A stretch of 63,585 bases of DNA, counting the filler, from Bigelowiella natans CCMP2755 (taxonomy: Eukaryota > Protista > Cercozoa), in the NCBI GenBank assembly GCA_000320545.1. It is 6 parts of 6 records of this genome, joined end to end, with 100 filler letters (N's around TTAATTAATTAA, not from the genome) between each part and the next. Parts side by side here need not be neighbours in the genome. Positions count along the whole stretch, not along the records: positions 1 to 14,140 come from ADNK01002189.1; 5 more parts are not named here. One strand, given 5' to 3'. How positions within the stretch are numbered: the first letter of the stretch is position 1; each line of letters starts with the position of its first letter. Under the pieces are notes generated by a model. That model was not told the DNA's origin. It saw only the letters and a list, made by a program, of their open reading frames with translations, and searched no databases. Position numbers and translations under genes: made by a program. Shown here in pieces: positions 556 to 50,061 of this stretch.

Positions 556-1221
556 TCCGAAGAGGCCGCAGCCTTGCCCTCGATTTTCTTTAATAAAGTC
601 AACAATTTTGTCACGTCTTTGGGTAAAAATGCCTTGTATTTGACGAATTTGTACTTGATGTCGCAGGAAAGATTGATAGGTCATTCAAGGGCAAGCCCGG
701 TATTTTTTTTATTGGCCGTTCTAGTCCCCGGTGGTAACCATGTAATTTTGTATTTGCTCAAAATTGCTCGACATATTATTGAGGAGAAAACCATGCCATT
801 TTCACATAACGATTATCAATCCAGGGCGCATGTGCTAGTGTGATGCGCCGCTCACAATTGCATAAATACAAACGAATTCTGGAAATGACGCCCATTTGTA
901 AAAATACATGTACCCAGTTCATGCTAGAAACATCCAAGATATTTCTCCCAGTACATGTAGTCCGGCCAGATCAAACCTGAAGCCGTGGAAATTAGACATT
1001 ACAAGCAGCCAGCACCCAGCAATTTCAGGCGTGCGACAAGGAACAAGGAATATCCTGGGAGAATCTTCTGTATTTCCTTAGACCAAATAACCGAATGTTT
1101 CGTAGGGGATTTTGGTGGATCGACAAGGTGCCGATAACCAATATCTACGAAATACTCGCATCGTGTAGTGCACTGACAGCTGCCATGCCTCGAACCAAAT
1201 GAAGAAGGAAGAAGAGGAAGA

Positions 1222-1342
1222 ATGGGCGCAGTGGTAAATATCAACAAACAAAGGTAAATTAGCATTGTTGATTTTTTAAGAAACCTAGACACAAGGCAAC
1301 AGTAGCAGCAGCTATTCCTTTATATAAATGACACACACATAC

Positions 1343-1380
<38 letters not shown>

Positions 1381-4300
1381 TCACACATTCACACATTCAC
1401 ACATTCACACACATTTCACCATATAAACAACCAATCAGTAGCAAGACAGTCTGGGAAGCTTTGGAAAGGAATGACATTGTTGCACTGAAGCGTTTGATTG
1501 AGGAAAAAGCAGACATTGAACAGAGGGATGCTGCGGGTAAATTTAGTGGGAAAGGACAGCATTATCGAGACTTCAGGCGACGAAAGATTTTGGAAAGGGA
1601 TAGCAAGAGGATTTTTGGGGAAATAGGCATGGGACTGCCATGAAGAGAAGGAAATTTCACTAAAAAGGCTGGTGTGATGGTTTCAGGGAGGCTCATGATG
1701 CGAGTTTATGAAATACTAATAAAATGGTGCTTTCCTATCATTCCTGCATTGATTTTTGGGGTATTCGTTCTAATGCACGATTGTTACACCGTTAATATCC
1801 TAGGTGAAACCCCTTTGATTTTGGCTTTGAGAAACGGACATGAAAGCATCGTCAAGCATCTGGTTGACGCAAAGGCGAATATCGAGGCAAAGGATAGATA
1901 TGGTTATTATGAATATTCGAGTTTTGCTAGCGTAAGGGAAGAGACGGACAACACCGAACCAAGAAAATGCCAAATTAATCGGTAATAGTTCCTATCTTTA
2001 TTTGTCGCACGCAATAGAATTTTGTGGTGGTGTTCGCTCTAATGCACGATTGTTACACCGTTGGTATCCTAGGTCGTACCCCTTTGATTTTGGCTTCATA
2101 TTATGGACGTGAAAGCATCGTCAAGCATCTGGTTGACGCAAAAGCGAATATCGAGGCAAAGGATAAACATGGTAAGTATGAATATTCGAGTTTTGCTAGC
2201 ATGAGGAAGGGAAGAAAAACACGAACAAGAAATGCCAATGATCGGAATAGTTCTATCTTCATTGTCGCCACATTGGATTTTGTGGTGGTGTGCGTTCTAA
2301 TGCACGATTGAGACACCGTTGGTATCCTAGGTCGTACCCCTTTGTTTTGGGCTTCGAGAATCGGAAATGAAAGCATCGTCAAGCATCTGGTTGACGCAAA
2401 GGCGAATATCGAGGCAAAGGATAGATATGGTAAGTATGAATATTCGAGTTTTGCTAGCATGAGGAAGGGAAGAAAAACACGAACAAGAAATGCCAATGAT
2501 CGGAATAGTTCTATCTTCATTGTCGCCACATTGGATTTTGTGGTGGTGTGCGTTCTAATGCACGATTGAGACACCGTTGGTATCCTAGGTCGTACCCCTT
2601 TGTTTTGGGCTTCGAGAATCGGAAATGAAAGCATCGTCAAGCATCTGGTTGACGCAAAGGCGAATATCGAAGCAAAGAATAATGATGGTAAGCATGAATA
2701 TTGGAGTTTTGCTAGCATAAGGAAGAGAAGAACAACACGAACAAGAAAATGCCAATGATCGGAATAGTTCTATCTTTATTGTCGCCGCATTGAATATTGT
2801 GGTGGTGTTCGTTCTAATGCACGATTGTTACACCGTTGGTATCCTAGGTCGTACCCCTTTGATTTGGGCTTCGAGAAACAGATATGAAAGCATCGTCAAG
2901 CATCTGGTTGACGCAAAGGCAAATATTGAGGCAAAGGATAGATATGGTAAGCATGAATATTCGAGTTTTGCTAGCATAAGGAAGAGAAGAACAACACGAA
3001 CAAGAAATGCCAATGATCGGAATAGTTCTATTTTATTGTCGCCGCATTGGATTTTGTGGTGGTGTGCGTTCTAATGCACGATTGTTATACCGTTGGTATC
3101 CTAGGTCGTACCCCTTTGATTTTGGCTTCATATTATGGACGTGAAAGCATCGTCAAGCATCTGGTTGACGCAAAAGCGAATATCGAGGCAAAGGATAGAT
3201 ATGGTAAGTATGAATATTCGAGTTTTGCTAGCGTAAGGAAGAGAAGAACAACACGAACAAGAAAATGCCAATGATCGGAATGGTTCTATCTTCATTGTTG
3301 CCATATTGAATTTTGTGGTGGTATGGAAGCATAATTGATGAGCCTGAAGGGAAATCTCATAATGTATCTGATGGGAGAAACGACGTAATATAACATCGAT
3401 GACCATGGTGGTTAGAATGATGACCAAATGAAGAACAGAAGGCCCATTTATAATTCTCTTTGTGACAGGCTTGACACCGTTGACCATAGGGGGATATGGA
3501 AGGATTGTCCAGCTGTTGGAAGGCGCGAAAAGAAGCCGCAACGTATATTTTAAGAATTATTTGGTGTTAGATGCATGCTGTTATTTAGCTATCATAGAGG
3601 AGGATGAAATAACTGAACCCTCTCAGATACATGATGAAACCAAGTTACACTGTGTATGCAAATATTGCTGATCCGATGCGAAGCATAATTGTTTTGCATT
3701 TTTCTTTTTTCCCCTACTCGCATCCCTTTCTTACGCCTGTATGCAACATTCGGTTTTGTGTGTGCTAAGAATGTCAACGCTCCCCTCTCCAACGAGGCTA
3801 TTAAACGGCTCTTCTCTAGAACGACGCCGTGGCGGCGGTCTCGCGTGATGATAGTTGGTAAAGAACACACTGGTAAAACGACGCTTTACATGGCTTTGAA
3901 AGGTGAAGAATTTCGCGACGTCGAATCAACGGTAATCCTACATCATAGACACAGAATATAATCATCATTAAAACAATATTCCATTTGTAATATACGGGTT
4001 CTTTCTCTTGTCACTATCTTATGAAGGTCGTGGCAGACGTTACCGTGCATGACGTCACTGTGGAAACAACAGATGCAGATCTAATCGGGGAAAACATAAC
4101 AGAAACAGTTTTCAAGCCCGTCGAACTCGGTAAGAGCTATGCAAGTGGAAGCTGTAATTCTTTAGTCCCAGTTTTCCTCATTATGGATTATTGTAATTTT
4201 TGTTTGTATAGGAGGTAATCATGAGAGGGCACTGGCATTGGCATACATAAAGGAGAAAGAAGAAGAAACAAAAAAGAAGAAGGAAGATGATCAACAGGAG

Positions 4301-4831
4301 GTGAAGGCAGATCCAATTTGTGTGAGTTCTGTCTGATGAAATTACTTATAGTATTAGTGAGGCATGATTGTGCACGGTAATGGTCATTGCGATGTATGTC
4401 TTACTACCCTCTCAGTTTCGTCCAAGTGATGAGAAGGAAGTGAATCCTTCCAGGAACGAGAAGAATGCGACAATAAACACGCATAAAGTAGCAATGGAGG
4501 AAGATACCACAGATTCTACAAAGGAAAGTGCAGCCGAGTATTCTTCTGCTGTTTTTGATGATTCAAAGGGGACCAATGCGAACGATGCCAGTGAAGCTGC
4601 CACAGAATCTAAGAGAGATCACAAACGCGGTGAAATAGACGAGGAATTGCTCCTAAAGGTACCAAACAGGTCTTGATTATAAGGCAGTTTTAGTAACAAC
4701 GAATTCCGTTAATATCTGCGCTATTTTGCTGATCCTGGGAAAAACTATTAGGAACTGAAGCCCGGGCGTTTGCAGGAATCATTTGATAATCCAGAAGCTA
4801 TACGAGTATATCTATGTGTGAATGTGTGAAT

Positions 4832-4872
<41 letters not shown>

Positions 4873-6880
4873 TGTGTGCGTGCGTGTGCCCACGAATGTT
4901 TGCGTTGTAGTTTTACGTTTGCCTCCTATGAATTTGTAGGTATCAGTCTGGGATTTTGCCGGACAAGAGGTGTTCTATACATCGCACGTAATGTTTCTCA
5001 ACCGCAACTGCCTTTACATGGTGGTGTTTTCCCTGGAGGAGTTCCTCGGAAGAGAAGCCGATGCTACGGGTATTATTTCGTATAGTATCTAATTAGAGAG
5101 CGAGGAAGTCAAACGCTACAATAGGGTTTGGGTGTATATTTGGATATTATTATGGTGTTCGGCATAATTGTGTAGAGGACAAACCATGGAAGAACTTACA
5201 CATTGTGTAATAAGCAGGTAACGTAGCAGCCAATCAAAGAGAGAGCGCAGAAGAATATCTCAGATTCTGGCTTCAAAACATCCGCACGTTTGCTCCTGGG
5301 GCGCCAATAGTGCTCGTAGGAACGAAGATCGATAAACTTAAAGAATACGATAACCCAGAGGTGACACTCGTACCACCACCACAGACACACTAGCAAGCAA
5401 AGTATTACACTCATACGTCCCGTCACTAACGTGTTTATATGATCTGGAAAAAGGAGCTCTTAGATGCACTCGAAGGCATCGATGAACATATCACGAGAAT
5501 AGCGAGAGAGGTATTTTATTATCCACAACATTTTGACATGTGAATAGGAGAAATCCATATTTGTGTGTGTGTGTATTTGTGTGCGTTCATGTTTCAGGTG
5601 TTTGAGGGGTGTGAGTCCTTTCCTTGGTCCCGATGTAAACAATGGCGCCCGAAAGAGGGTTCAGAACCAGCAGATCTGGTTTTCTTCCCTGCTGACAGCA
5701 AGTAGAGACTGTATATTACTATCTAGTCGATGATCGGCTATCTTTAGTATCTTGATTTAACCTTTTATCGGTTTCTACTATTCATCTCCAAAATCATTTT
5801 CATCATCATAAGGTTTCGATCGGGTGATGGGAAAGAAGTTCATGGCACGATTAAAGAGCTGCGCAACGAGGTGCTGAAGAAGCTTAAGAGCGATCCAAAG
5901 GTACCATGATATTATAATGGTGGTGTTATACCTATAACCTCTTTGTCCAATAATATACCAGGCAAATGAGGAAGTTCCATCCGAGTGGACCAAAGTATGC
6001 GACGATTTGATCGCCACAGAAAAGGCTGTATTTACCTTGAAAACGGCCAAAGAGATATGCCTCAGGCGTGGAATCGTGGATGAAAGGGAAGTACGATTGA
6101 TGTTGCAAAAGTAAGTTGCAGAATCAAGTATTATTGTACAATATCAGTCAATTTAGCATTCTGAATATTTCAATACTACTTAGGTATCACGAGCTAGGAT
6201 TAGCGATCTACTTCGACGAAGAGGATCTGCGAGATGTGAGTATTCCAATCTTCTCCATAATCTACTTGAAGCTTGCCTGAGGAATGCATTCGTCGACAGC
6301 ACATCGTTATGCGACCACAACACCTGATTGATCTGGTGAAGAAGCTCATATTTGATCGTCGCTCACATCGCAAATTATACAAGGATCAAAAGCTGTAATA
6401 CACTTACAACATATTCATGTTTATATGTTACTGCTTTATTTTCAACATGATTGTACATGATATATTCTCAAACGAATTTAGGGTTGCCAAGCATGGAGAG
6501 AAAGTCGAAGAGTAAGTAGAGCAATCTCCCACTTTCATCATCTTTTTAATAAGTTAAATCCAAAGATTATAGAAGCAAAATGGTCTGGAATGTAATGGTC
6601 TATATGTATGAACAGTTGTACGCTAAATCTCAGTGGGATGTGTGATAATTCTGTCGTATTTAGGTTTCTTGACATCGGAATTATACACAATGTAGTGTTG
6701 AGACACCTAATGCTCACTCATAATAGCAAAGAATGCCACATCGAAGCAGCAGACGATAAGGAGCGGCTGTATGTGTTCAGTCGCAAGATATTGCAGAAGT
6801 AGTTCATTTTATTTTAAATGCGAAGTTGAGAGGATTAGGGTTGGGAGCTTGCTATCTTGCTATTCCTCTCATCTTGTAGT

Positions 6881-6926
<46 letters not shown>

Positions 6927-8691
6927 GCTAGTAGATGATTTTCTCTAATTTCTTTCTACATATTTTCCCCATTTGCTGCTAAACAGGTTTATGATACTTT
7001 GTGAGATCGGTGGAACAGAGAAGTATTTAGTGCCTTCAATGATGCAAATCAAGGAAGAAGGCATGGATCAAAAGGAGCATTCAGTTGTCGCAATGTTTTC
7101 CTTGCACTTCAATCGCCTCAGGCCCCGTTCATATTTTGAGACCTTTTCCGGGAATATTGGTAGCGACAAATGATTGTTTTAATTACCATGCCAAGTTCAA
7201 TTCGTTACGAAAGACTGTAATTCACAATCTCTGAATTCAATATTCGAAAACTGTATGTCCATATTATTTAGCTCATTTTGTCTTTCTCTCTCAATTCTCT
7301 GCTTGTCCCTCCTTAATTTCTATCATATGTGCGTATTTTGCCGCATATGCATGACAGCCACGAAGCTCTCATCCGATGGCAAGTTTTCCAGGGAACTTCG
7401 GAGAGGTGATCAGATCAATGATTCTGTCTAGAAAAGAGATAAGAATAATCATTATGTTGGAGAAATCAATAATAATTATGGTTTGTTTTTTGTGTTCAGG
7501 AGCTACGAACCCAATGATCTTAGAGGAACAGGTACATCACAGTTATCTTAATATCATCATATTTGCAAGGACTTTCTCAATTATTTACACATCAGACTTT
7601 CGGGAAAGGAGAGGCAGAAATATATCTGGAGCCCTTACGTTTCCGGATTAGTACCTCAATGCTAGAGAAGAAAAAAGGGTCCTCAAGAAATAACACCTCC
7701 CATTCCCATAAAATAGCACCTTCACAACCATACAATGTACGATGTATGTTCTCGGTAGGAGGAGGTCAAAGCATGTAATGGCAATAAATGTCGAAGTTTT
7801 GTCGGAAATTGGACACTGTGCGAGGTGCGTAATGATATTACATTAGTGCCTCTTGTGAATATGGAACGTAACACGCAAGATAGCAGATCCACAGCAAGCT
7901 TTATCCAATAGGATATTAAAATTCATTCTGGAGATCGCCAGAAGTGTCCACAAGTGGCCGTACAAAAACAATGAAGCCTTGGATTTCAACGTTCTTCTTT
8001 TCGATCGGTATATGCCTGCATGATTATGTCAAAATATTTTAGAATAACATCATCTGTAGCAGTCGTAATAGTAGTAGTAGTAGTTGTAGTATCCGTATTG
8101 CAGCTAGAGCCGAGATATCGGTTTCCTACAATGAGTTGCTTACTTAATCAGAGCATCTTATCCATATATTCGCAGTACGATGACGTATCCCGTGAAGTAT
8201 GAAAAATGGGAAAAAGCCTGCAAGGAAAAGAAAACCAAAGTTATCTCTGAAAGAACCTCCGAAACAGCCTCCAAAATGGTCGAAATGACCCATCTCCGGT
8301 ATTGGGAGCAGTTCTACGATCTTTTCTTCGAAAACTCAACACTACGGTAGCTTCTTGATGTGTAGAATGTAAAATTGATTAAATTAATGAATTAGAACAT
8401 ATGGGAAATTGGATCAACAAAGATTACACCGACTTGACGTTAAATACAACAGTGTCCATTCTCCATCATTATGATGACTTCCTTGTTATTCGGTTGCAGT
8501 TACACATTTACCCAACGATGTGAATCCTCATCGCAAGACTTTGGCAACGATAACAACAAGAAGTTCATCAAATTGACGATCGTAACGCAAATATTTAAGG
8601 TGTCTGGATATATGATGCATGTTAAGAGCATGAAAGAGGATGTACACGACTGTATACGTAACGTTGAGAGAATAAGAGCTTCAAACATTTA

Positions 8692-8728
<37 letters not shown>

Positions 8729-11345
8729 CATAGTACATATACATACACATAACGAGAGAGGGGGAAGAAGCCAGGAGAGAATACAGATTCTATATTTCAC
8801 AGTTATTGTATCCTTCGGAAAGCGTTAAGTGCACAAGCCTGCGTATGAAGAGTCTATCTCCTGCAGCTATTACAAGTGGAAGAATCACTTTCGAAGAGTA
8901 CGTTCAAGTTTTGATTAATGTCTTGCATACACACATATCCTACCATCTGTGTAAGTATATCGATATTATATTTCATCCAACATAATCGTTGGTTATTATC
9001 CTACCCAGGTTTATTAATTTAATGTGGGTGGAGCGGGGACTTCAGTTTCGTAACGCTAAAAACGCCAATGATTTTGAAGCGAAATTGGAAGCTTGGGTGA
9101 AACCGCTCATAAATACTAAGGTACAAATCGGTACGCTGAAACGTATAAAATTTTTGGCAAGATTAAACACACTCACACATACATACGAGAGAAAGAGAGG
9201 AAGAGAGAGGGGGGTGGGGGGGGAGTGAGAAAAGAGGGAGGGGGGGTGAAAGAGGAGGTTGGCTATCGTCTCCAACTTTCCTTTTTCACTTTCTTTTCTA
9301 CGCTGATTTAGCATTTCAATCTCTATTCTTTCCAGGAATTACCTGCGCACTTGGCATTTGCATTTGCTTTGCCGTTGGACAAACCGAAGTCCATGCTGGA
9401 TTTAGAGAAAGATCTCAGAATGTTGCAAGATATGAGCAAATTCAATTGCACAGAGTATGAAGACGGTACTGTTGTCAAACGAAGCAAGCTTCACATATCC
9501 AAATGGAGAGCTACTAAAGAAAATATCTCTAGAGCTCTTCAATCGAAATGTTTCGCATTACTAGTGGGTTCTCATTGCAGAGAACAACTTGGCCTCAAGT
9601 TGGAAGCTGACCACCCTCTAGGAAAGACAACTTACCTCGAGTTCGAATCCGACAATCCTGGAGGAAAGGCAGTATACGTGAGCCCTGATGAGTTTTCCCA
9701 ATTGATTATGGAGACGAAAGAAACTCCAAAGATGTGCTCTTTGAAAGTATTGATGCTGGCTTCATGCGGGAGCGAAGCTGTAGCTAAAAGATTCGTTGAT
9801 TCGAAAGTAGTCGATCACATAATAGTTTGTAATAAAAACAAATTACTGGGCAATGAAGCTGTGCAGATATTTCAAACGGTCTTTTTCGAGAAATTGCTGG
9901 GCGGGGCTACAGTTTCTACCTCATTCAAATCTGCCAAGCAAAAGCTAAAAGATATGGCCAGCGTCCTCAAAAAAGAGGCTGCTGATTTGATTAAAAAGGC
10001 TGATAATCTTGAGGAGAAGTCCATAAGAGTCAAAGAATTTCGCAGTGAGTATGATAAATGCAAAAGTCGGGCAAAAATGTTGACTAAAAGGGCAGAACAG
10101 CTTAATGAGGAGGTTGACGAGTGCCTTCTGCTGCCTAAAGATGGGAATCATGATATCGCTTTCTCATTTAAACCTTATTCCCCCCCCACCGCGAAAATCA
10201 AGACATGGCATCCTGCTCCCCCAAATAATTTTTATCCAGAACATTTCTGCGAGTAGCTTAAGTGGGGAATTGACCACTATTTGAAACTTCAACGGAATCT
10301 ATACTCGGCTCTACAATGTGATGATAAAAACTCAATCCGTCATCGTTGGGTGCAAATCACAGGACCTAAGAATATAGGAAAGACTTCAGTAGCTAAGTTC
10401 ATTGCCTGGCGTCTAAGTCTCTACGATACAGAAGGACCTGATGGCATCTTTTGGGTAGGGATACCATGTACTCACGCACAAAATTTAACTTCTGCTGAAA
10501 GTGTTTTCTGCATGGCTTAGGTTACTGAGGTAAAGAGTGGAGACGAAGTGATGCAAAAATTCATGAGAAATTTCATCGAGGATGAGTCTTTTCGCACGGA
10601 AAATGTTCAGAATTGTGATCCTTATGGATTGATCAAGGGATTCTTTACGGAAAAAGCTAATCCTCCGACACTCTTGGTGCTTATGCTATTACTTCCCAAA
10701 TTTTGAGACATTCTTATGCAACCATTTTCATGTACCCAGATAATCGATGACGTAGAAGGCGTGAAAGCCGAGGATCGCGAGAAACTCTTCAAGAATCTCA
10801 TGAACCTCAACCCAAGACTACACATTCTCACAACATCTTTGACTCCGATCGAAGTGAAGGGCTTCGACTCCAATGTGCAGTTTGGGTGTTTGTTTGCTGT
10901 ACACATGCATGTGATTCGATATTGAGTTTAGTGTAGTAATCAAATTCATTCTTCAACAGAAAAAAGACCTGAAGTTGGAAGTATTGCCCAAGATCAAGTT
11001 TAAGAATTTTTTCAAGGAACGAGTTTGTGACTTCAAAGATCCAAAATTTGAGACTTTGGTTTGGGAAAACATCCAGCTTTACCATTTTACAAAACTGGAG
11101 GGTACATGTGCATCTTTTCATGCTTGATTAAATTTGTGTTGATCTCGTTGTGCTATGATGCACTGTGTCACATTTCAGCTGCAATCACGAATGTCAACAT
11201 GAATCCCCGGACTGCAATCCTTCTCGTGCGGAAAATCCATGAAATGAGCTCCGATGTGGACAAGTACAATGAGATCAACAAAATCAAAGACAGATCTTTT
11301 CTAGTCACAGTCTACAACGAATTGGTCAAAGAGAAAGCTATTTAG
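1222..11345 (+). CDS. Multi-exon ROCO-family protein: ankyrin repeats - Roc GTPase - COR - CHAT (caspase-like) domain - STAND/NB-ARC-like NTPase, with an in-frame TAG at 10254-10256
   Basis: Exon 1 is 1222-1253 (MGAVVNINKQ) and exon 2 is 1439-1536, followed by six ankyrin exons. Roc motifs: G1 MIVGKEHTGKTT (~3848-3883), G3 SVWDFAGQEVFY (exon from 4940), G4 IVLVGTKID (~5305-5335). COR motifs: VPSEW, YHELGLAIYF, IVMRPQHL, KYLVPSMM. CHAT exon from 9336 with LLVGSHC and LMLASCGS. STAND motifs: Walker A GPKNIGKTS (10362), Walker B PTLL|IIDDVE, sensor-like ILTTS. Terminal stop at 11343-11345. Confidence 0.85.
1765..3320 (+). repeat. Tandem array of six intron+exon units (~258-bp period), each with one 99-nt ankyrin-repeat exon
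   Basis: Exons at 1804-1902, 2073-2171, 2331-2429, 2589-2687, 2848-2946 and 3105-3203. All follow an ATCCTAG acceptor and end in G|GT (phase 1-1). The intervening introns are near-identical, and 2172-2330 equals 2430-2588. Confidence 0.97.
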
Positions 11346-11890
11346 AATGTCTAGTCTTCCAAATATAGGCATGCATGCTTCTCTCAAATTTTCAATTTGA
11401 TGAAGCGCATCATTCACCAGAATGGATAGGCACATTTTAGACATTGCGTATGCATTTGTCTCAAACACGCAGTTCTTCACCTACATGTAGCAAGCTGAAG
11501 CTGCGCGCATGATCATGCGTGCAGGCGCATCACCTTGCAAAACAAGTACTAGTGTGACCTAAAAACATTTCATTTTCACAATCACAATTTTCTTCGATGC
11601 ATACATGCTAGCATGATTAGCATGTCATCTAGTCATGACCAGCTAGCTCATTGGCGTGCTTGCTTATATGCTTGCTCACCGAGGATGCATGCACATGCAT
11701 GATGGATGCCAAATGCCAAATCTCTTGCATCCATTGGCGCACATGCACTGAGTCAAAACGTCTGCCGAAATTCCCACATTTCGCACAATCTGGTAGTAGC
11801 TAGGTCGCAATTTTAGGTGAATGATCACAAGTTCTCTTCATTGCATGCCAGCTAGCTAGTGTGGTGGATGATGTTGCCAACGCGCTGGGG

Positions 11891-12756
11891 CTAAATCCAT
11901 TGCGAAGACATGCGCGTCCTGCGAGAATCATCACCAGACAACGACGGATACGCCTCCACGATGGCCGGGAGCACATCTGCCTCGAGGTGATCGACAACGC
12001 TGTTTTCCGGGTTCACCAGTATCAATCCACACCCTCTCAAGGAACTGTGCCGTTTGCTTCTCGGCTCTTTCTGACTCCCGCTGGTACCGGGCTCATCTCC
12101 ACCACTGCTATTCTCCTCAGGAATTCTTCCAACAATATCCAGTTCTATCTCGTATATTGTATTACCTAACAGGCACCGTTTTAAAGCACTCTTCGCTTTG
12201 ATCAAAGCCCTGCTTTTCTTCGTCACCGCTTCCGATATGTTGTCGCGGAGGAGAGGGTACCAGAGAATGTGTGTGCCCTGTTGGAATGCCTTTGTGGCGT
12301 CGAACAAGCCTTGAACTATCATCTGGTATTCCGAAGGGTGCTCGTAAGGCGGGTCTATCAAGCACATCGTAAGCTCCCCGCTCCCAGAGGCAGCAGCCAC
12401 CCGTTTCTTTCTTTCCTCAGCTGATTTGCAATGCCATGCTATGTTTCGATTCAATCCAGTCCAACATTACACCAAAAACACTTCTATCTGAAAAATGATT
12501 GGGTTGTTTGACGTGAGATCTTACCCTCTTTCCGCAAGAACTGAAAACCACACTGGGGCTGGATTTGGACATTTTGATGATCCGGAAATATATCTTTGGA
12601 GTTTTCGCGGAGAGTCTCAACATCCGACGGGTGCAATTCGCAAAGGACGACACGGGAGTCTTTGCTCAGATAAGGGGCAACGTAAGCTGGTGATCCTGGA
12701 TACCTGCATCATTCGTGCGCCATCCCATCGAAATCTGTTTGCATCATGTGTGCAGA

Positions 12757-12804
<48 letters not shown>

Positions 12805-13138
12805 GGGGGCTGTGTTACCAACGCGTCGCAGAGGTCTCCACATTGTATGACTGGATACATTCCAAGTAGGGGCGCAGTGCTGCAGCGTTGGCTGTTCTGC
12901 GAAACGCGGGAGAAGCCAGCAGCTGCGCGATCCCCGTCTTGTGCTCGTTCCGCTTCCGTGCTTGCTCGGATGTCAAGTCGTACAGCCCAATGCCCGCATG
13001 GGTTTCAACATAAGAGAGTGGCGTTCTCTCAGCCTTCGCCCGAGCTGAAAGGCGACCTGCCACAGTCGTAACGACGACGTGCTTCAGCACGTCGGCGATG
13101 TTGCCTGCATGGAACGCATGCCGATAGGACAGCACCAT
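11891..13138 (-). CDS. rlmJ: RlmJ-like 23S rRNA m6A methyltransferase, 3 exons (13138-12819, 12703-12525, 12420-11891)
   Basis: MVLSYRHAFHAGNIADVLKH, YVETHAGIGLYDL, WYPGSP, LCELHP, LIDPPYE (catalytic DPPY), LWYPLL and GCGLILVNP match the RlmJ/YhiR family. Two GT-AG introns restore the frame. The start could be as far upstream as 13201. Confidence 0.92.
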
Positions 13139-13513
13139 TACGTCGGGTCGCAACTCACCAAGGTACGTAGATGACGACAGGGTCATTTTGATGTCGTTCA
13201 TATGTAAACGACATGTGTTTCCTCATAATCCTAAGAATCTCCCCCGAGATACGTTCGAGATCCTGAGACGGGATTGGAGCGAATCCCTGGCCTCTTACCC
13301 GTAAAACCGCTTCACGGTTGGCCAAGCATTTAGAAGGAAATGGCATGTGATCGCGACGGGAGTCATGTGGGTGAGGAGAAATCTTTGCCAAAATGGAGAC
13401 GAAGACGCCCTGGCTGGGAGTCATTCCGGGACTTTTTTTAAGCCGAAAATACCTAAATCGATGCTCGTCCAAGATCGCAACAGGTACTAGCAGTTTGCGG
13501 CTCAGAAAGCGAA

Positions 13514-13785
13514 ATGAGCGACCCCTTTGCCAAGGCCCCCGAGGGCAGCACCAAGAAGAAAGAGGCGTTGGCTTGGCGATCCAAGTTTTTGGAGATTGCC
13601 AATGAGCAGAATTATAAGTTGAAGAGTGACAAGGAAGTGGCGGAGGTGGGTTGTTTCCCCTCTCCTCTCTGGCGGAAGCATGGAAGTCGAGCACATGAAA
13701 GCTTCTTCCACCCCTTCTTCCTCACTTTCCCCCTTTCCTTTTCCCTCCACTCTCATTATTCTTTGCTGTCCGTTTCGAATCGTCT

Positions 13786-13847
<62 letters not shown>

Positions 13848-13970
13848 TCTCACAGAGAAAAAATGACAGAATGAGCAAACTAGAACTATACACGTAATCC
13901 ATAATAGGAGCTGAAGAAGAACGGATTATCTGTGCTCTATGTCACCTGGTCCGATGTCGGGAGATCTAAG
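13514..13970 (+). CDS. 5' part of a hypothetical protein, truncated by the assembly gap
   Basis: Exon 13514-13645 (MSDPFAKAPEGSTKKKEALAWRSKFLEIANEQNYKLKSDKEVAE), then a GT-AG intron containing (CT)n, then exon 13908-13970 (ELKKNGLSVLYVTWSDVGRSK) in phase 0. Confidence 0.5.
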
Positions 13971-14140
13971 GTCGTGATGAGCCTTATTCTTTTACTCTTC
14001 TTCTTCCCATTGGGATAGAGCGAGAGTCAACTTTGACTAAAATAAGAACCCCCCCATGGGAACAAAAATCCCGGACATGCATTTCTTTGCAATGTTTCCT
14101 TCCCAGGTGGGAAAAGGTGGGGAGGGTGGGGAAAAGGAAG

Positions 14141-43339: not shown

Positions 43340-44627
43340 ATACCTTTCAAGCTCCTTTATAAACGTTCCTTTATCACAGCGCTCGAGGACTGACGCAGAC
43401 TTCTTGATTTGTTCCACTACATAGCTCTTTGCGCTCTTATCAACATGCTTCATTGATCCTAGTGTATCCAGACAAAGGGCATAGTCGTGTACCGCTGGCT
43501 CTATTTTCGTGAAAACCTCAACCTTCCAGTCAGGGATCTTTTCGTACTCTTCCTTATCGATCGCCTCTTTTTGTTCCGTAAGCTCTTTTTTCTTGGCTTC
43601 TCGCTCCTCTGCTGCTTTCTTTTCCTCTTCCTTTTTTCCCTCCTCTTCTTTTTTCCCCTCCTCTTCCTTTTTCCCCTCCTCAACGGAAGCCTCAGCGGCC
43701 TTTTGTTCTGCCTCCTCAATGGCTTTTAGCTCTTCCAAAATCTTTGCTACTTTTTCTTCATTCTCCTTTTGCTTGGCTTCAACCTCTGCTTTCTTTTCCT
43801 CGGCAGCTTTCTTGACCTCTTCGATCGCAGGTAGGGCAGCGTCAAAGTTGGCGAGGCTCGTGTATGCCTTACAAGAGATATGCGCGCAAAAGTAGGAGCC
43901 AGTTTTGGGGGTGGTAAAGAAGACTGTCTTCCTGGCCGCCGGACCAATCAGAACGTTTTCTATTGAGAGCGTATTTGGATCCTTTGGTGGATTCTCTTTC
44001 CCCTCCTCTGGCTCAGCTTCCTCCTCCTCTCCTTCCTTCTTTTCGAATATAGTGAAAGTCGATCCCTCGTCCTTTTTGAGCAGCTTTGTGAGCATGAACT
44101 TTTGGCCCGAAGTTGCGGCAATGTACTTCAGCACCTCCTCCTTTTCCTCTCCTTTAGGACGCTCTACCTTCTCACCGAGGTATACGTTAGGTATCACCAG
44201 ATTTTCGCTCAGGTGTTGGCAAAGCCGATCAAAGTATAGTTGTGTGTGATTCACTTCCTCAAGGAATGCATTGAAAGCCTTCAGTTTCTCCTGGACGGCC
44301 TTCTTCGATTTGGTCATTGCCATCTGCACTTTCGCTGCACTTATTGCTTGCATGTTAATCATTTTCATACTCTTTTCTGCCATAGCGATTTCCTTAGCTT
44401 TGGCTTTCCCCTCACGCTTCAGCTTTACGTAGTTCAACAGCCACTTGCCGAGATAGTCAACGGAATCGGGTGGCGCTTGTAGAACGGTTTCGGTGAGACC
44501 TAAACGAACGAAGTGCAACAATTAGAACATCTACATATCCTTTCAAACTTTCAGATATTTGTAGTGGAGTGACATTACCCTCAGAGAGAGCCTCGCCAAC
44601 ATTCTTTTTCAAGTACTCCACGTCCAT
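42136..44627 (-). CDS. Dpy-30-motif axonemal protein, radial spoke protein 2-like (3 exons, E/K/A-rich coiled coils)
   Basis: The N-terminus MDVEYLKKNVGEALSEG|LTETVLQAPPDSVDYLGKWLLNYV is a Dpy-30 dimerisation motif. It is followed by a coiled coil, a GAF-like segment (NVYLGE...LKYIAAT...EGSTF) and acidic repeats. The RSP2 assignment is inference from architecture. Confidence 0.7.
42780..42995 (-). repeat. Coding 54-bp tandem repeat (ADEAGGDDKATLEEKSKA) x3 plus partial copies
   Basis: Direct repeats are visible in both DNA and translation. A second, 24-bp repeat (AEEEAKAK) lies at ~42210-42340. Confidence 0.9.
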
Positions 44628-45410
44628 GACCTAACAGAGAAAACGTGAGCGTTCGTTTTCCAGCTGTGTGTTGTGAAAACGAACGAAGGCTGTCGCCTCG
44701 CTAACTGTTAATCTTGTACGTCTTTGTGAAAATGAGTTTGACGAAATTCGAACGGAAAGCACGCCTGTGTGGAGCAAGGGGGGAGATAGGTCGTTACAGG
44801 AGGCGTTTCAGACCTTTGTACGAGCTATTCAGCCATACGGGAGAGGCAAGTAGTAAAACGAAAGAAGAAAGAACCTCTATTTATTATTACGTCTCAATAT
44901 ATAAGTTGTCGTATCAATGTAACACAGAACAACAGCCATAAAGTGGTTTCCTAACCTCAATCCCGAGATTTTAGTATAAGATATTCGATAAAATATAAGT
45001 CGGCAACGATAGAAACCATAATTTGTAATTGACGTATTATAAAAAAGGGTCCTAATTTTATCATCTTTTACATGATGTCGTTATGAAAAAGGCGCATAGA
45101 TTTCAGGACAAAATTACAATATTGAATGTAGGAGTAGTTCGTCGTAGTAAAAAGGGGAGCATTTGTCGCAAGTTCAGTATGCTGTGTATTTTATCCAACT
45201 GTAAATTCAAGATAAGCAAAGCGTGAATATGATCCGGGATCCCTCATCAATTACATCACTTGTACAAATATGAGCATGATTCAAAATGACGACATCATTT
45301 AATTGAAATCAATTATCAAACTTCTTGGTATTTTGCGAACTGATCAAATCTTAAATCTGCCGCATCCCTCGACTGCCCCCCTCCTTGCTCCTTGCCCCTC
45401 TCACAGAGAG

Positions 45411-46464
45411 ATGGAGAGGCTTCGACCCTACCGTAACCGGGGCCGAATAGGGATCGGATTATCGGTTGGGTTCCGGGTACTCGTAGTGATGGCTGTCGTA
45501 AGCCTTCTCTGCGCTAGCCAAAGTGGGAGTTTTAACACATGATCATTCACTACCGGCAGACACGCGCGCATTTGCATGAGGACGCGTTTGTTGCAAATAG
45601 GTACTCATGGTGGAAAGCTAGGAGTAAAGCCATGGTGGCGGCGTTTCCCCTGGGACTGGCAAGACCCGCACCTGGAACCTGCATGGAAGCGAGGCCTGCT
45701 CCTACCGCAGGTGCTAGCCGAAAATACTCTCAGAATATAGCCTGAAAACGAAACTCTTTCTGTTATGATAGTTTGGCAACCCTGGCATGGATTCATATCC
45801 CTTCTGGTCTTTGACGCTTCGGATTCTCTCCCTGCCAGTCAACGCAGTATTTTACCCTACACGCACCGTCCTCGACATTCCCAAAGCGATCTACAAGCGC
45901 TATGTGCTTCTCAAACCTGGAGCTGTTGTGAGGGTTGGAGACTGGGATCTTGAAAAGGTGTTTTGTATGATATAAGTTCTAATAGAGTTAACTTTGAAAC
46001 ATAGCTGGGTTGCGGTCCCCGTACAACTTCGTCTACATGTGCATTTGTTCTACTTCGCACCCAAGATGAAACCGCACCATTTCGTTCTCCGTCCACTACG
46101 CGCATATTCCTGATTCGCACAATCATGTGTTCTCCTATTTTGTGTACAAGGACCATGGGTATTTTGGAGACCAGAAAGGCAGTCTCATCAAGAAGGTATT
46201 GTGGAGCAAAACGTGTAATAACTTCGGAGTCTGCTGTGATTAAACTACTGTGATAATTGTACAAAGAACGTCCTGCTGGGGAAATACGAGATCCAGCTCA
46301 AAACCGGAAGGATTAAAACATACAACTGCAACGATCTCTTTTATATCAGTAAGCAGTTGACCACTGTAGCTGTTAGCTTAGAGAAACGCTTCAAGCAATA
46401 CATATCTGTCGGCCCTCCTAAAACAATATATATCCATCGTTCCTCTGAATACTGGGCTAAACCG

Positions 46465-46504
<40 letters not shown>

Positions 46505-47264
46505 TATTTACGTGTACGCAGAAAAAGACCAGTATGATAAGGAATTTGACAGCATTGGGCACTTCAAAAACTGTTCCGTCCTGTACTCCTACAAGAACGA
46601 TGTGCGTGTTTGTTTCTACACCAATACGTCTAAAACCGGATCTTTCACACCCCTTAACATCATCCTCTTTGACCCCCCCTCCCCCCACTCTCCCTCTTGA
46701 AGACAAAGTACTACGATTTCGATGCGACGATCAGCGACGATGATGGGGAGGAATTCCATCAAGCTGTGAACCTTAGGTTGTAAAAAAGAGTTAAAAATAA
46801 TAAAGACAGGATGCCGATATGAGAAGAGCCTCAATCGAGAGCAACTAATGTCAAAAATATCCCATATAATCGATTTATCCCATATCATCGATTTTCATGA
46901 CTGTCGCACGGATATATGACAGACCTACGCTGCTGTTCGGAAACCGCACCTACTTCATGCCGGGTGGGTGTTGTTTACTGGAGTGTTTGTGGCGGTTGAC
47001 AAGATAGTGTGTACTTGCTGCGTCCTTGCTATGTTTGTGCTGTGCTGCCGCAGACGTTGTTTTCCGTTCGTCCGCTCGCTTTTACACTTCAAACTAGTAC
47101 ATGTGTGAGATGTAACCACCATTGTAACTACCAGGCGACCGTGTGCGAATAACTAAGGGCTATCGAGCCGGAGAATATGCGACTATTCTCAAGTGGCTGG
47201 CAAGGAAGCAGAAATGGGGGGTATTCCTCAAGCGATATTTCTCTCTCCCCTCCCCCCCCCCACC

Positions 47265-47360
<96 letters not shown>

Positions 47361-47400
47361 GTGTTGTTATGCCTTGCCTTGCCTTGCTTCTTCTGCTGAC

Positions 47401-47431
<31 letters not shown>

Positions 47432-48472
47432 CGACGACGACAACAACAACGACAACAACGACGACAACGACAACGACAGCAACCTTTACTACTACTATTA
47501 CTACTACTACTACTACTACTATTTCTTCTACACATTCCTGAAAATCGTCGTGAACTTTTCTGGCAGGTGACAGCGATGATAGGCGATGAGATGCTGGCCT
47601 ACAGCGCCTCGCAACTAGAGTTTTTCGACCCATACACCCCCTTAGAGAACCTGATCTCGCAGTCTGACCCTCGCATTCAAGGTAGTAATGGTAGTAGTAG
47701 TATTAGCAGTGTATTAAACAACACGAGTGCTGTTTACCCCCCCCCCCCCTCCCCCGTCGATTGATGATGGCTACGATAAACGATGACCACTCTTCCCTGC
47801 TGCCAGACACCAAGCGTTTGATTGAGACGTTCCGCAAAGACCCCGACGGGTGGATGCGCGGTCTCCAGGGCACGTGCAAACAGCTTGCTGACGACCCCAA
47901 CGAGGCGATAAAGCTGAGAAAGGAGGCGGAGGCACTGAGCGGTTTCGACGTAGAGAGGACATGCCACAACCCGGTCATTTGATATACATTCCCACGGCCT
48001 TTTCTCCCCGCCCCTCCTTCAAATTGTTTAAGAACTGCGATGTAGTAAACCGGATAGTATGCCTCCTACCCCCCCCATTCTCCACAGGAGGTTTATCTAC
48101 ATACGCACGCACACGGTCTTCTTCCACTCTCAGGTTTTGCAGCACCTGATATGTCTCCAAGCCCTCTACTATGGCGATGAAGTGAATGAGGTAGCGTTGG
48201 ATATGGTAGAGTTGGAGGGGGGTGGGGGGCAGAGTGTGTGGCGGGTCTTATCATCCCGCAGACGATTGGATAGAAGCATGCCTGTACCTTAGGCTTCGTT
48301 GTTAGTGGCGCCCACTAGGGGAACAACGCCACGCCGCCGCCGTTAGATTTGAAACTAAGATGAGCGTGGATCCCATTCTGAGTCCAAAGGTTTTTAAGAT
48401 GCTATACAACAACGCAGTCAACTATGGGGGGGGCCGAACGGTGGACCCTAGGGAGTCATCAAGTCTTCCATG
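45411..48472 (+). CDS. Hypothetical protein with N-terminal signal/transit-like leader and KOW/SH3-like motifs; probably truncated by the gap
   Basis: Leader MERLRPYRNRGRIGIGLSVGFRVLVVMAVVSLLCASQ. In-frame exons include LKPGAVVRVGDWDLEK|DHGYFGDQKGSLIK, NVLLGKYEIQLKTG, GDRVRITKGYRAGEYATI (KOW-like) and DTKRLIETFRKDPDGWMRG. Confidence 0.6.
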
Positions 48473-48529
48473 GTATGGATCATAGTTTCCCAATGATGAA
48501 TCGATAAATTTATGGTTGGATTTCTCTCC

Positions 48530-48629
48530 NNNNNNNNNNNNNNNNNNNNNNNNNNNNNNNNNNNNNNNNNNNNTTAATTAATTAANNNNNNNNNNNNNNN
48601 NNNNNNNNNNNNNNNNNNNNNNNNNNNNN
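48530..48629. other. Artificial scaffold linker N44-TTAATTAATTAA-N44
   Basis: Same 100-bp linker. Confidence 0.97.
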
Positions 48630-48715
48630 TTTTGACGTCGTTTCCTGGACATGCAAACGCAAACGCACACGCACACGCAAAAGCCGCGCCGTCAAAACCA
48701 ACGTGCTTTTTTGGT

Positions 48716-48754
<39 letters not shown>

Positions 48755-48842
48755 CTAGAGAAATCACTGAATATCTTGAATATCTCTGATTGAAAATTGA
48801 TTTTTCTGGAGCGCCTCTTTGACTCCCCCCCCCCTCGCCAAC

Positions 48843-48984
48843 CTTGTTGAGTCCCGCACGACCAATCGAGTAGACTTCCGCGGTGAGGCCATCCGAGATG
48901 ATGAGGCTTTTGTTGTCGATTGCAACGTGGGTTATGCGAACCCCGGCTTCCAGTTGAAACACTGCAGAGAGAGAGAGAGAGGTA

Positions 48985-49022
<38 letters not shown>

Positions 49023-49064
49023 CAGAGTGTTTGTCTGTGTGTGTATTGGGATGACTGCGGACAC

Positions 49065-49101
<37 letters not shown>

Positions 49102-49147
49102 GTATCAATATCATAATAATACATGCAGTTTCCCCCATCACCTACCA

Positions 49148-49186
<39 letters not shown>

Positions 49187-50016
49187 ACCCCCACCTTTCT
49201 CCTCGCTCCGGACGATGAGATGCGACTTGGTGAGCTGCACGTAGGATTTCCCCAACACTGACTTGCACAGCAAGCGGTGCTGGTTGAGAATGGCCACGGC
49301 GTGGTGCGTCCCCACCGCCAGCAAACCATGAGAACCAGGCGCCCACGTTAAGTCAAAGATCCCGCTGCTCATCCTGGTGATAAATAAATAAGTAAAAATG
49401 CCGACGAAACAAGAGACAAATTAGAAGAAGAAAAGGAAGAAGAAGGAGAGGAAGAGGAAGAAAGGCAAGCAGTTGCGGAAATTATCTAACGACATCGAAG
49501 AGTTTCACACATCAACAATGGGAATCCCAAGACCGAAGCACATCGGAGCTTGCGGTTGGAGGAGCATCATCCGAAACAAAAAAAGAAAACGTGAAAATCA
49601 TCCTTTTCCATTTTTTAAAGAAAAATGGAAAAAAAAAAAAAAAAAAGGCCAGCAAGCACACGCAGCGTTACTTCTTCGTGGCCATCGGGTGCCAAGAACT
49701 GTCATCATTCTTCGCATCCGGAGATCCGACATATCTCCAAAGATGCACTCTGCCCCTCGCTGTCCCCGCTGTCAGAAGACGCTTTGTAGGGTTGTAGGCG
49801 ATGGTGCGGATTGAGTCAGGCGACGCGTTTTTCTTCTCCGACGGCTCCTCCTCGGGGTGGAGAGTGTAGTTTTCTCCTGCTTCTAGGTCCTGTTAAATGC
49901 GATGGCAGCAGCGGTGTTTGCGTGCGTGAGTGCGAGCTTATTAGATGTAACCCTGTTAGATCATGTTAGCGCCGTTGCAGACAGAAAATTCGCACGGTGA
50001 TATCTCCACATTGTTT

Positions 50017-50061
<45 letters not shown>

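Follow-up and report, generated by a model that had tools for sequence, protein, structure and literature searches.

The window is the whole stretch of 63,585 nt of Bigelowiella natans DNA that was analysed, and the features described below lie on its plus strand. A tandem array of 6.1 units was found at positions 1747-3322 by Tandem Repeats Finder, with a period of 258 bp and 90% matches. The array was also recovered by self-comparison, in which its units matched one another at 85-100% identity. Each unit consists of a 99-nt exon and an intron of 158-170 nt. An AG stands directly before and a GT directly after each of the six exons, which are read as G|GT...G, that is, with intron phase 1 on both sides. 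On translation, each array exon gave one 33-aa ankyrin repeat.

Ankyrin exon 1 (1804-1902) reads GETPLILALRNGH...DRY, with ILALRNGH as helix 1. It is followed by exon 2 (2073-2171; helix 1 ILASYYGR, turn DKH), exon 3 (2331-2429; FWASRIGN, DRY), exon 4 (2589-2687; FWASRIGN, NND), exon 5 (2848-2946; IWASRNRY, DRY), and exon 6 (3105-3203; ILASYYGR, DRY). Six 99-nt exons of phase 1-1 had been claimed in the initial annotation, and their borders and all helix-1 and turn strings were reproduced exactly. The donor of exon 1 is GTTATT, and the other five units carry GTAAGT or GTAAGC. The exon at 2075-2170 scored 29.8 bits against the Pfam Ank profile PF00023 (gathering cut-off 21.1), covering profile positions 3-33 of 33. 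Furthermore, a single array exon was aligned by phmmer in register with consensus-ankyrin and DARPin chains, with E-values down to 1e-18 on these multi-repeat chains.

The array introns had been described as nearly identical, which proved too strong. Their pairwise p-distance ranged from 0 to 14.5% with a mean of 9.3%, introns 2 and 3 were the sole identical pair, and indels were present in intron 1. An RNA hosted in the introns was also considered as an explanation for the array and was rejected. No Rfam match was obtained in 1420-14140, and the folding of intron 2 was no better than that of its shuffles (z = 0.26).

Domain order of the gene and its paralogs

The gene that carries the array begins with a putative first coding exon at 1222-1253, which opens with an ATG and has a GTAAAT donor in phase 2. 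Its frame joins the exon at 1439-1536 as AG|T. A dinucleotide microsatellite occupies 1381-1416, within the first intron of the gene. The exon at 1439-1536 encodes an N-cap, a divergent partial ankyrin repeat with a helix-2-like ...IVALKRLIEEKADIEQRD... segment, and ends in phase 1; a homologue of this exon is present upstream of the array in the paralog C3059. On the other side of the array, the C-cap exon (3469-3542; G-LTPLTIGGYGRIVQLLEGAK...) has phase 1 at its start and phase 0 at its end, where the donor is GTATAT. A homologous C-cap occurs in the transcript-derived protein P0001. Neither the N-cap nor the C-cap exon gave a Pfam match when searched singly.

A Roc GTPase domain, divided over several exons, follows at 3770-5369, as indicated by the PF08477 profile and by collinear tblastn matches with the proteins P0001 and P0002. 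It includes G1 (GKEHTGKT) within 3770-3931, G3 (WDFAGQE) within 4940-5069, and G4 (TKID) from 5218 to about 5369, and an acidic insert exon lies inside the Roc region at about 4413-4658. The searches with the window gene were run exon by exon. Three successive exons matched PF08477 positions 1-30, 59-91, and 90-119 in order, and the G3 exon alone reached 30.6 bits, above the cut-off of 27. The COR-like C-terminal region extends over many exons from 5440 to 8350, with a probable stop after 8347, and was assigned by homology to P0002. The exons at 5440-8347 were collinear with residues 284-722 of P0002 (tblastn), which carries the COR-A domain PF16095; the direct COR-A Pfam match on one window exon was weak (E = 0.096). 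The predicted product therefore consists of an ankyrin domain of N-cap, six repeats, and C-cap fused to Roc-COR, and because of this fusion the gene is classed, on its sequence, as a putative ROCO GTPase. When the protein collections were queried with a Roc exon, P0002, and the ankyrin part of P0001, no product or transcript of the window gene itself was found, and the matches were solely paralogs and generic ankyrin proteins.

The genome contains nine close Roc loci and at least four ANK-ROCO paralogs with ankyrin-exon arrays of their own. Each of the ROCO paralogs C3059, C2355, and C777 has four ankyrin exons of 99 nt in phase 1, and their units repeat about every 255, 530, and 654 bp. Array sizes of 6, 4, 4, and at least 4 exons were counted in the family, with differing unit lengths. 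Ankyrin-exon matches also adjoin the Roc exon of C2356. Ankyrin exons of this kind number in the hundreds across the genome, in arrays reaching 30 exons or more, and the C2798 array has no Roc downstream. The window locus is a small member of a genome-wide class and not a singular device.

Two paralogs are represented by proteins. P0001 is an MMETSP transcript protein encoded by G000:C3059, with 584 of its 592 residues within exact 8-mers; when the contig collection was searched for P0001 itself, no exact match was obtained. Its ankyrin exons are spliced exactly at the predicted phase-1 borders. P0002 (jgi/Bigna1/135601) maps best to G000:C2355, with 84-97% identity per aligned exon piece. At least one reference gene model, that of P0002, opens with Roc and leaves out the ankyrin exons that lie upstream; therefore, the ANK-ROCO family may be under-annotated.

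Recombination traces and possible exon skipping

A lag-258 identity scan revealed a recent duplication of one unit at 2169-2670, which is offset in register from the exon borders. Positions 2169-2412 equal positions 2427-2670 over 244 nt without a difference, and this was the sole identity run of at least 60 nt at this lag. Exon 4 is the same as exon 3 over its first 82 nt. The exons belonging to the identical introns 2 and 3 show a difference of 14%, exons 2 and 6 are separated by 2 nt while the introns of the same units are about 7% apart, and the exon and intron genealogies disagree across the array. In a tree of ankyrin exons, the exons were grouped by locus. The scaffold distance was 0.00-0.12 within arrays compared to 0.08-0.43 between arrays, and it was 0.13 or more between arrays except for the pair of C1330 and C2352. 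Unequal crossover and conversion in the germ line are indicated by the offset 244-nt duplicate and by the way in which exons cluster within loci. Unequal crossover and conversion had been proposed before, and both the offset perfect duplicate and the discordant exon and intron genealogies speak for that proposal.

A genome-wide search had been suggested for paralogous arrays and for orphan donor exons. The first were found, at 72-87% DNA identity, and the second were not: outside the array, the paralog arrays were themselves the best DNA matches, and a bank of donor cassettes was rejected. Two helix-1 variant segments had no second occurrence in the genome within 2 mismatches.

The possibility that the repeat is mis-assembled or the gene is a decaying pseudogene was considered at this point, as the 244-nt perfect repeat in units 2-4 is open to collapse or expansion by an assembler. 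However, each unit has substitutions of its own by which reads can be uniquely placed, and the stretch is present in 14 DNA runs from 13 studies. In RNA-like runs, whose RNA status is a guess, 26-29% of the words of 1200-6200 are contained, which is roughly the exonic share and likewise counts against this reading. In its favour, the contig is short (14 kb), and just 0.80-0.83 of the sampled words occur in the DNA runs. A mini-exon that is used in a paralog has lost its GT donor in the window gene, as might be expected of a decaying copy. Against this, the six ankyrin exons and the cap exons are all open with canonical splice sites, and the Roc-COR exons follow intact paralogs collinearly along 722 residues. 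We consider an artefact or a dead gene very improbable.

The skipping of any subset of array exons would keep the frame, as had been claimed, and the flanking exons at 1439-1536 and 3469-3542 are also in phase 1 on the array side. The array might thus act as a combinatorial isoform generator, in which symmetric exons would be skipped alternatively within a cell or clone and one gene would give many ankyrin domains; this is the strongest form of the interpretation in the initial annotation. Every junction is in phase 1, and the splice-site contexts are near-identical in five of the six units; however, five of the six exons also carry consensus-type GTAAG donors, which argues against such skipping. 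In P0001, ankyrin exons A and B are followed by the C-cap, and the genomic exons C and D of C3059 are missing. This gap may instead be a shortcut of a short-read assembler through the identical 39-nt 3' end of exons B and D. [quoted passage not shown] An isoform generator of this type is, in our judgement, unlikely.

Variable surface and constant scaffold

Across the six array exons, 24 of 99 columns are variable. The exon differences had been described as concentrated at the turn and helix 1, and 20 of the 24 variable columns indeed fall in the 12 codons of this region (20/36 columns). In helix 2 and the loop, 4 of 51 columns are variable, and all of these changes are synonymous. Repeat positions 14-30 (ESIVKHLVDAKANIEAK) are invariant in the protein in all six exons, in agreement with the scaffold invariance reported earlier at the protein level. 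The beta-turn and helix 1 are the usual ligand face of ankyrin repeats.

Five of the six exon positions that we take to be equivalent to the randomised DARPin positions vary (2, 10, 11, 32, and 33), and the presumed equivalent of DARPin x33 is an invariant Lys. The randomised positions are reportedly those listed by Binz et al. in 2003. Variable columns made up 32 of 158 in the introns, compared with 20/36 in turn/helix 1 and 4/51 in helix 2/loop (Fisher p = 4e-5), and 12 of 18 at the DARPin-equivalent positions compared with the same introns (Fisher p = 9e-5); these column-based tests overstate significance because changed bases lying side by side, for instance in exon columns 26-32, do not count as separate events. 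The pN of the window array was 0.33 at the DARPin-equivalent positions and 0 in helix 2.

The contrast between surface and scaffold was also observed in other arrays. The entropy profile of the window array recurs in C2798, C1330, C2352, and C3059, and low scaffold variation is likewise combined with high surface variation in the arrays of C2355 and C777. Family-wide substitutions were counted over 33 independent nearest pairs. With local synonymous sites as the reference, the surface pN/pS was 0.9-1.0, and with those of the whole exon it was 1.55-1.77 (p about 1e-3 to 1e-4). A dN/dS above 1 had been expected at turn and helix-1 codons; the surface pN/pS exceeded 1 only with whole-exon pS as the reference. 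Across the family, the rate of change at surface codons is close to neutral or a little higher. For the turn and helix-1 codons, this pattern is suggestive of diversifying selection but is not proof of it.

A neutral, young exon amplification could produce a similar picture, if the turn and helix 1 varied merely as the least constrained ankyrin positions and no function depended on diversity. The family-wide surface pN/pS of about 1 against local synonymous sites is in line with this, and the low intron divergence (3-14%) indicates young units. Such arrays also occur in genes with other partners, for example C2798, which lacks the downstream Roc. However, the surface pN of the window array (0.29-0.33) is about 3-fold the intron distance (0.09) and about 2.5-fold the whole-exon pS (0.13). 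In addition, the exposed helix-2 residues E14, S15, K18, H19, D22, K24, E28, and K30 show zero replacements in 15 exon pairs, where several would be predicted under neutral divergence, and the surface-variable, scaffold-conserved contrast is repeated in the six further arrays. We regard neutral expansion as a minority possibility that is rather less than likely.

The reading that we favour, and hold to be probable, is an intact ANK-ROCO gene whose array is reshuffled by germ-line crossover and conversion, with the scaffold kept and the ligand-face residues free or favoured to differ. The apparently intact gene would encode a cytosolic ROCO-type GTPase with the ankyrin domain followed by Roc and COR. 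Germ-line unequal crossover and short conversion tracts between units would let the array grow, shrink, and be reshuffled, and the symmetric phase would keep every recombination product in frame. Recent ancestry, homogenisation, and purifying selection may together maintain the identity of the helix-2/loop scaffold. The beta-turn and helix-1 residues would be free or favoured to differ, giving each repeat a distinct surface patch. The ankyrin solenoid would bind a protein partner, and the Roc-COR module would transduce this binding. The gene anatomy, the family, the traces of recombination, and the variability by site are shown by the sequence analysis, and from these we infer that a ligand is bound, that the protein acts like a receptor, and that diversity is selected for.

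Comparison with known systems and implications

In animal ankyrin genes, such as that for the membrane-binding domain of vertebrate ankyrin, a 99-nt exon corresponds to one 33-aa repeat, and duplication of exons enlarged the arrays, as in general models of exon duplication for repeat proteins. The window gene has the same 99-nt exons, 33-aa repeats, and growth by exon duplication. In animals, the arrays are old and have diverged, and their introns are unrelated. In the window array, by contrast, the introns are 86-100% alike and the scaffold is identical, and for this reason the process appears to be ongoing.

DARPin libraries and the window gene both combine an N-cap, internal repeats with an identical framework, and a C-cap, which is a functional analogy only. 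Unlike DARPins, the window array also varies at positions 6, 7, 9, 12, 13, and 31, including the His of TPLH and the GH pair. Its diversity resides in six fixed repeats, whereas that of DARPins is a combinatorial library.

Exon shuffling is described for the LRR-ROCO and NB-ARC-TPR genes of Ectocarpus and other brown algae (Zambounis et al. 2012, PMC3341825; Front Plant Sci 2024, PMC11378527). For the brown algae, both positive selection and alternative splicing have been reported. The repeat-per-exon ROCO system has been proposed there as a candidate system of immune receptors. The parallel with Ectocarpus ROCO genes drawn in the initial annotation is closer than first thought, because the window gene, with its downstream Roc and COR exons, is itself of the ROCO type. 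Both have a Roc-COR core with N-terminal solenoid repeats, one repeat per exon of equal length and symmetric phase, a multigene family in which the repeat number varies, and variation concentrated at the presumed ligand face. They differ in the repeat, which is ankyrin (99 nt, phase 1) in the window gene and LRR (72 nt, phase 2) or TPR (126 nt) in brown algae, and in the host, a rhizarian chlorarachniophyte as opposed to a stramenopile. Furthermore, unlike in brown algae, exon and intron together form the tandemly repeated unit, which is young and clearly evolves in concert within each gene. With its ankyrin repeats, the array represents a new version of the ROCO exon-shuffling scheme that has been described in Ectocarpus.

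According to the surveys cited in PMC11378527, ANK-ROCO proteins are found in oomycetes and Gonium, and ankyrin domains occur in LRRK1/LRRK2 and DAPK1. These proteins have the same order as the window gene, with ankyrin N-terminal to Roc-COR. The reports, as they are represented in PMC11378527, concern domain architecture, and a hypervariable repeat-per-exon array is not described there.

A wider interpretation would give B. natans a large, undescribed recognition repertoire of ankyrin cassettes, with faces diversified by selection and with exon skipping, as a counterpart of LRR immune-receptor repertoires. The repertoire of this unicellular alga would then comprise the ANK-ROCO genes together with the arrays of 30 or more exons in other genes, and it might be aimed at giant viruses or other partners. 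We find this interpretation unlikely.

The favoured reading of a germ-line-reshuffled ANK-ROCO gene has a more general meaning. The genomic logic of the brown-algal genes recurs in Rhizaria, a lineage unrelated to them, where it employs the ankyrin fold and extends across the genome; therefore, a convergent use of symmetric-exon tandem arrays for the quick evolution of binding surfaces is suggested. The locus would also provide a natural case of a constant ankyrin framework with predicted variable contact positions, in which the introns are still alike enough for single recombination events to be reconstructed.

Ankyrin exons and the gene that carries them

Tandem Repeats Finder confirmed the array at 1747-3322, with a period of 258 bp, 6.1 copies and 90% matches. 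Six copies of a conserved 32-nt core are spread across it, each inside a 99-nt segment that has AG immediately before it and GT immediately after. These six exons lie on the + strand at 1804-1902, 2073-2171, 2331-2429, 2589-2687, 2848-2946 and 3105-3203. Each is read as G|GT...G, the intron splitting a Gly codon after its first base, and encodes one 33-residue ankyrin repeat. A lone exon scored 29.8 bits against Pfam Ank, above the gathering score of 21.1, and was in register with consensus-ankyrin and DARPin chains from the PDB. The one-repeat-per-exon array is genuine and far exceeds chance expectation.

Translation of the six exons reproduced exactly all helix-1 and turn strings listed in the initial annotation, and the scaffold it called invariant showed no protein-level change at repeat positions 14-30. 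Its description of the introns as nearly identical was too strong: introns 2 and 3 are the one identical pair, with differences of 3-14.5% in the others. Unit 1 is the outlier of the array, with the donor GTTATT (GTAAG(T/C) elsewhere), a 170-nt intron (1903-2072) with several small insertions and 12-15% divergence, and Glu at residue 2 where the other units have Arg.

The surrounding gene was analyzed exon by exon, and its model consists of predicted exons. On the + strand, the array is preceded by a putative start exon at 1222-1253 and, at 1439-1536, by a divergent exon resembling an N-cap, both ending in the matching phase; it is followed by a divergent C-cap-like exon (3469-3542, +) beginning in phase 1. 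The domain is thus read as an N-cap, six internal repeats and a C-cap, and any subset of the six exons could be skipped in frame. Further downstream on the same strand, three consecutive Roc GTPase exons match positions 1-30, 59-91 and 90-119 of the PF08477 profile, the second exceeding the cut-off by itself. A COR-like region 3' of Roc is collinear with the paralog proteins to about position 8347. The predicted gene is thus of the ANK-Roc-COR (ROCO) type, extending over approximately 1222-8350.

The transcript of a paralog on contig C3059 has a 45-nt mini-exon between the C-cap and Roc. Its homolog at 3598-3646 (+) has TT at 3645-3646 in place of the GT donor and an acceptor out of register; it is probably skipped or spliced from another donor, and was modelled as skipped. 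Dinucleotide microsatellites were observed in introns and intergenic DNA at 1331-1413, 4815-4888, 8696-8727, 12757-12801 and 13787-13851.

Two further genes were predicted nearby. The one at 9312-11350 (+) includes a 314-codon open frame, which had no Pfam match above threshold; its language-model features placed it nearest CHAT (caspase-like) protease clusters, with a score of 0.93-0.94. The next exon contains a P-loop (GPKNIGKTS) and weakly resembles nSTAND3 (E=0.054), so that a protease-STAND NTPase gene may adjoin the ROCO gene. Two open frames at 11891-13201 (-) align with positions 2-61 (E=1e-9) and 116-172 (E=4e-12) of the RlmJ family profile PF04378, which looks like an intron-split gene resembling this rRNA methyltransferase.

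Distribution and origin of the differences among units

Across the six units, 24 of the 99 exon columns are variable. Twenty of them fall within the 12 turn and helix-1 codons (positions 2, 6-13 and 31-33), where the initial annotation had placed the differences, and the other four, all synonymous, within the 17 helix-2/loop codons. The positions randomised in DARPins, which we take to correspond to 2, 10, 11, 30, 32 and 33 in exon numbering, were fixed in advance, and the register was checked against PDB DARPin chains. At these positions 12/18 columns were variable, compared to 32/158 ungapped intron columns (Fisher p=9e-5), and 9/18 compared to 13/158 when the divergent first unit was left out (p=3e-5). 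By the Nei-Gojobori method, pN was 0.33 at the DARPin-equivalent positions and 0 in helix 2/loop, with a whole-exon pS of 0.13 and an intron p-distance of 0.09. These column tests and pN/pS values come from a small sample of six units, and adjacent changed bases in the column tests (e.g., columns 26-32) are not independent events.

The sole long perfect run at a lag of 258 is 244 nt (2169-2412 = 2427-2670). It represents a duplication of one unit that is out of step with the exon borders, starting at the end of one exon and running up to column 82 of the following one, and the two copies of the duplicated unit are distinct only in turn codons. The introns after exons 2 and 3 are identical although the exons themselves are 14% apart, whereas exons 2 and 6 are 2 nt apart, yet their introns differ by about 7%. 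Exon and intron genealogies are therefore in conflict, and such a mosaic is the expected outcome of unequal crossover combined with short conversion tracts.

A genome search for the unit (91.4 Mb, 3736 contigs) recovered the anticipated paralogous arrays as the best DNA matches outside the array, at 72-87% identity. Donor copies were found neither by this search nor by look-up of two helix-1 variant segments, which had no other genome occurrence at ≤2 mismatches. The array introns contained no Rfam family, and intron 2 folded no better than shuffled sequences. Neither splicing-based nor somatic diversification of the array is supported.

Selection was assessed on 33 phylogenetically independent nearest exon pairs from seven arrays, with pN/pS based on local or whole-exon pS (0.093). 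The surface (turn and helix 1) gave pN 0.144 and pS 0.143, the DARPin-equivalent positions 0.164 and 0.182, and helix 2/loop 0.032 and 0.069. The anticipated excess above 1 at the turn and helix 1 appeared against whole-exon pS (1.55 for the surface, p about 8e-4; 1.77 for DARPin-equivalent positions, p about 1e-4; Fisher) and disappeared against local pS (1.01 and 0.90). Helix 2/loop gave 0.35 against whole-exon and 0.46 against local pS. The scaffold is under purifying selection, and the rate of change in the surface face is neutral or somewhat above neutral. Synonymous changes are locally more frequent there, which suggests that changes arose in clusters, through patch conversion or from older haplotypes. 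The original interpretation is supported in part: germ-line shuffling and a variable putative ligand face are supported for this gene, while adaptive diversification is suggestive only, and diversifying selection on the face is plausible.

Related arrays, transcripts and comparison with known systems

A single-exon protein query of the B. natans genome returned 483 first-look candidates and 145 scored matches, many in evenly spaced runs. Arrays of 99-nt phase-1 ankyrin exons were present on contigs C2352 (10 exons, period about 179 bp), C2798 (14, 256 bp, with a three-unit higher-order repeat), C3059 (4, about 255 bp), C2355 (4, about 530 bp) and C777 (4, about 654 bp). C1330 contains at least 31 ankyrin units, 28 of which passed the 99-nt exon filter (period 179 bp). 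Its units (43500-50200) combine a 99-nt exon with an intron of ~80 nt; several variant units, reading CNTPGHTPLFCGHLEIVKC..., follow a gap 12 bp below the usual 179 bp. The C2798 array (6200-9877 and 10050-10262) is organised in a higher-order repeat of 768 bp, with helix 2 alternating among three types as well; no Roc was found downstream of it, where a C2H2 zinc-finger-like open frame lies instead.

Nine close Roc paralogs were found in the genome. Four Roc loci, including the window gene, have a sequenced ankyrin-exon array upstream on the same strand, and at a fifth, on C2356, ankyrin-exon matches adjoin the Roc exon. Entropy in C2798, C1330, C2352 and C3059 followed the window array, with peaks at positions 2, 6-13 and 31-33 and low values at the remaining positions. 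Each array has a private scaffold, with distances of 0.00-0.12 within and 0.08-0.43 between arrays (at least 0.13 apart from the closely related C1330/C2352 pair), and exons cluster by locus in the maximum-likelihood tree. Therefore, the arrays expanded or were homogenised within genes after these separated.

Words sampled from 1200-6200 were present at 0.80-0.83 in 14 DNA runs of 13 studies and at 0.26-0.29 in six runs guessed to be RNA, near the exon-internal expectation, which hints that the window gene is expressed. The MMETSP transcript product P0001, a paralog ROCO protein, is encoded by C3059 (584/592 residues in exact 8-mers), and its junctions are the predicted phase-1 borders. Two of the four ankyrin exons in the genome are missing from it, in frame (C3059:13052-13405, minus strand). 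The exon just ahead of the gap ends in the same 39 nt as the final missing exon, so exon skipping and an assembler shortcut account for the gap equally well. The C3059 paralog also has a GC donor at its N-cap and a truncated first unit. Published accounts of exon skipping in B. natans contradict one another and report no bias toward exon lengths that are multiples of three (PMC6142364).

LRR-ROCO genes built from 72-nt phase-2 exons and NB-ARC-TPR genes built from 126-nt exons are known from Ectocarpus and other brown algae, where shuffled exons, alternative splicing and positive selection acting on the concave face have been reported (PMC3341825, PMC11378527). ANK-ROCO domain orders were noted in oomycetes and Gonium (PMC11378527). 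Full-text literature searches found no paper on B. natans ROCO genes or ankyrin-exon arrays. The repeat-per-exon scheme is shared with the brown-algal ROCO genes, but the repeat fold (ankyrin), phase and lineage (chlorarachniophyte, Rhizaria) differ, and the B. natans array was caught with its introns still alike. With its caps, constant framework and variable contact positions it resembles DARPins, as a functional analogy rather than by membership.

The paralog ROCO protein P0002, recovered like P0001 by searching the whole library with one Roc exon, is the gene model jgi/Bigna1/135601, with its best genome match on C2355. Starting only at the Roc P-loop, this model leaves out four 99-nt ankyrin exons upstream (C2355:38700-41400); judging from it, the ANK-ROCO family may be under-annotated. 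The main interest of these results lies in the genome-wide reach of the phenomenon in B. natans.
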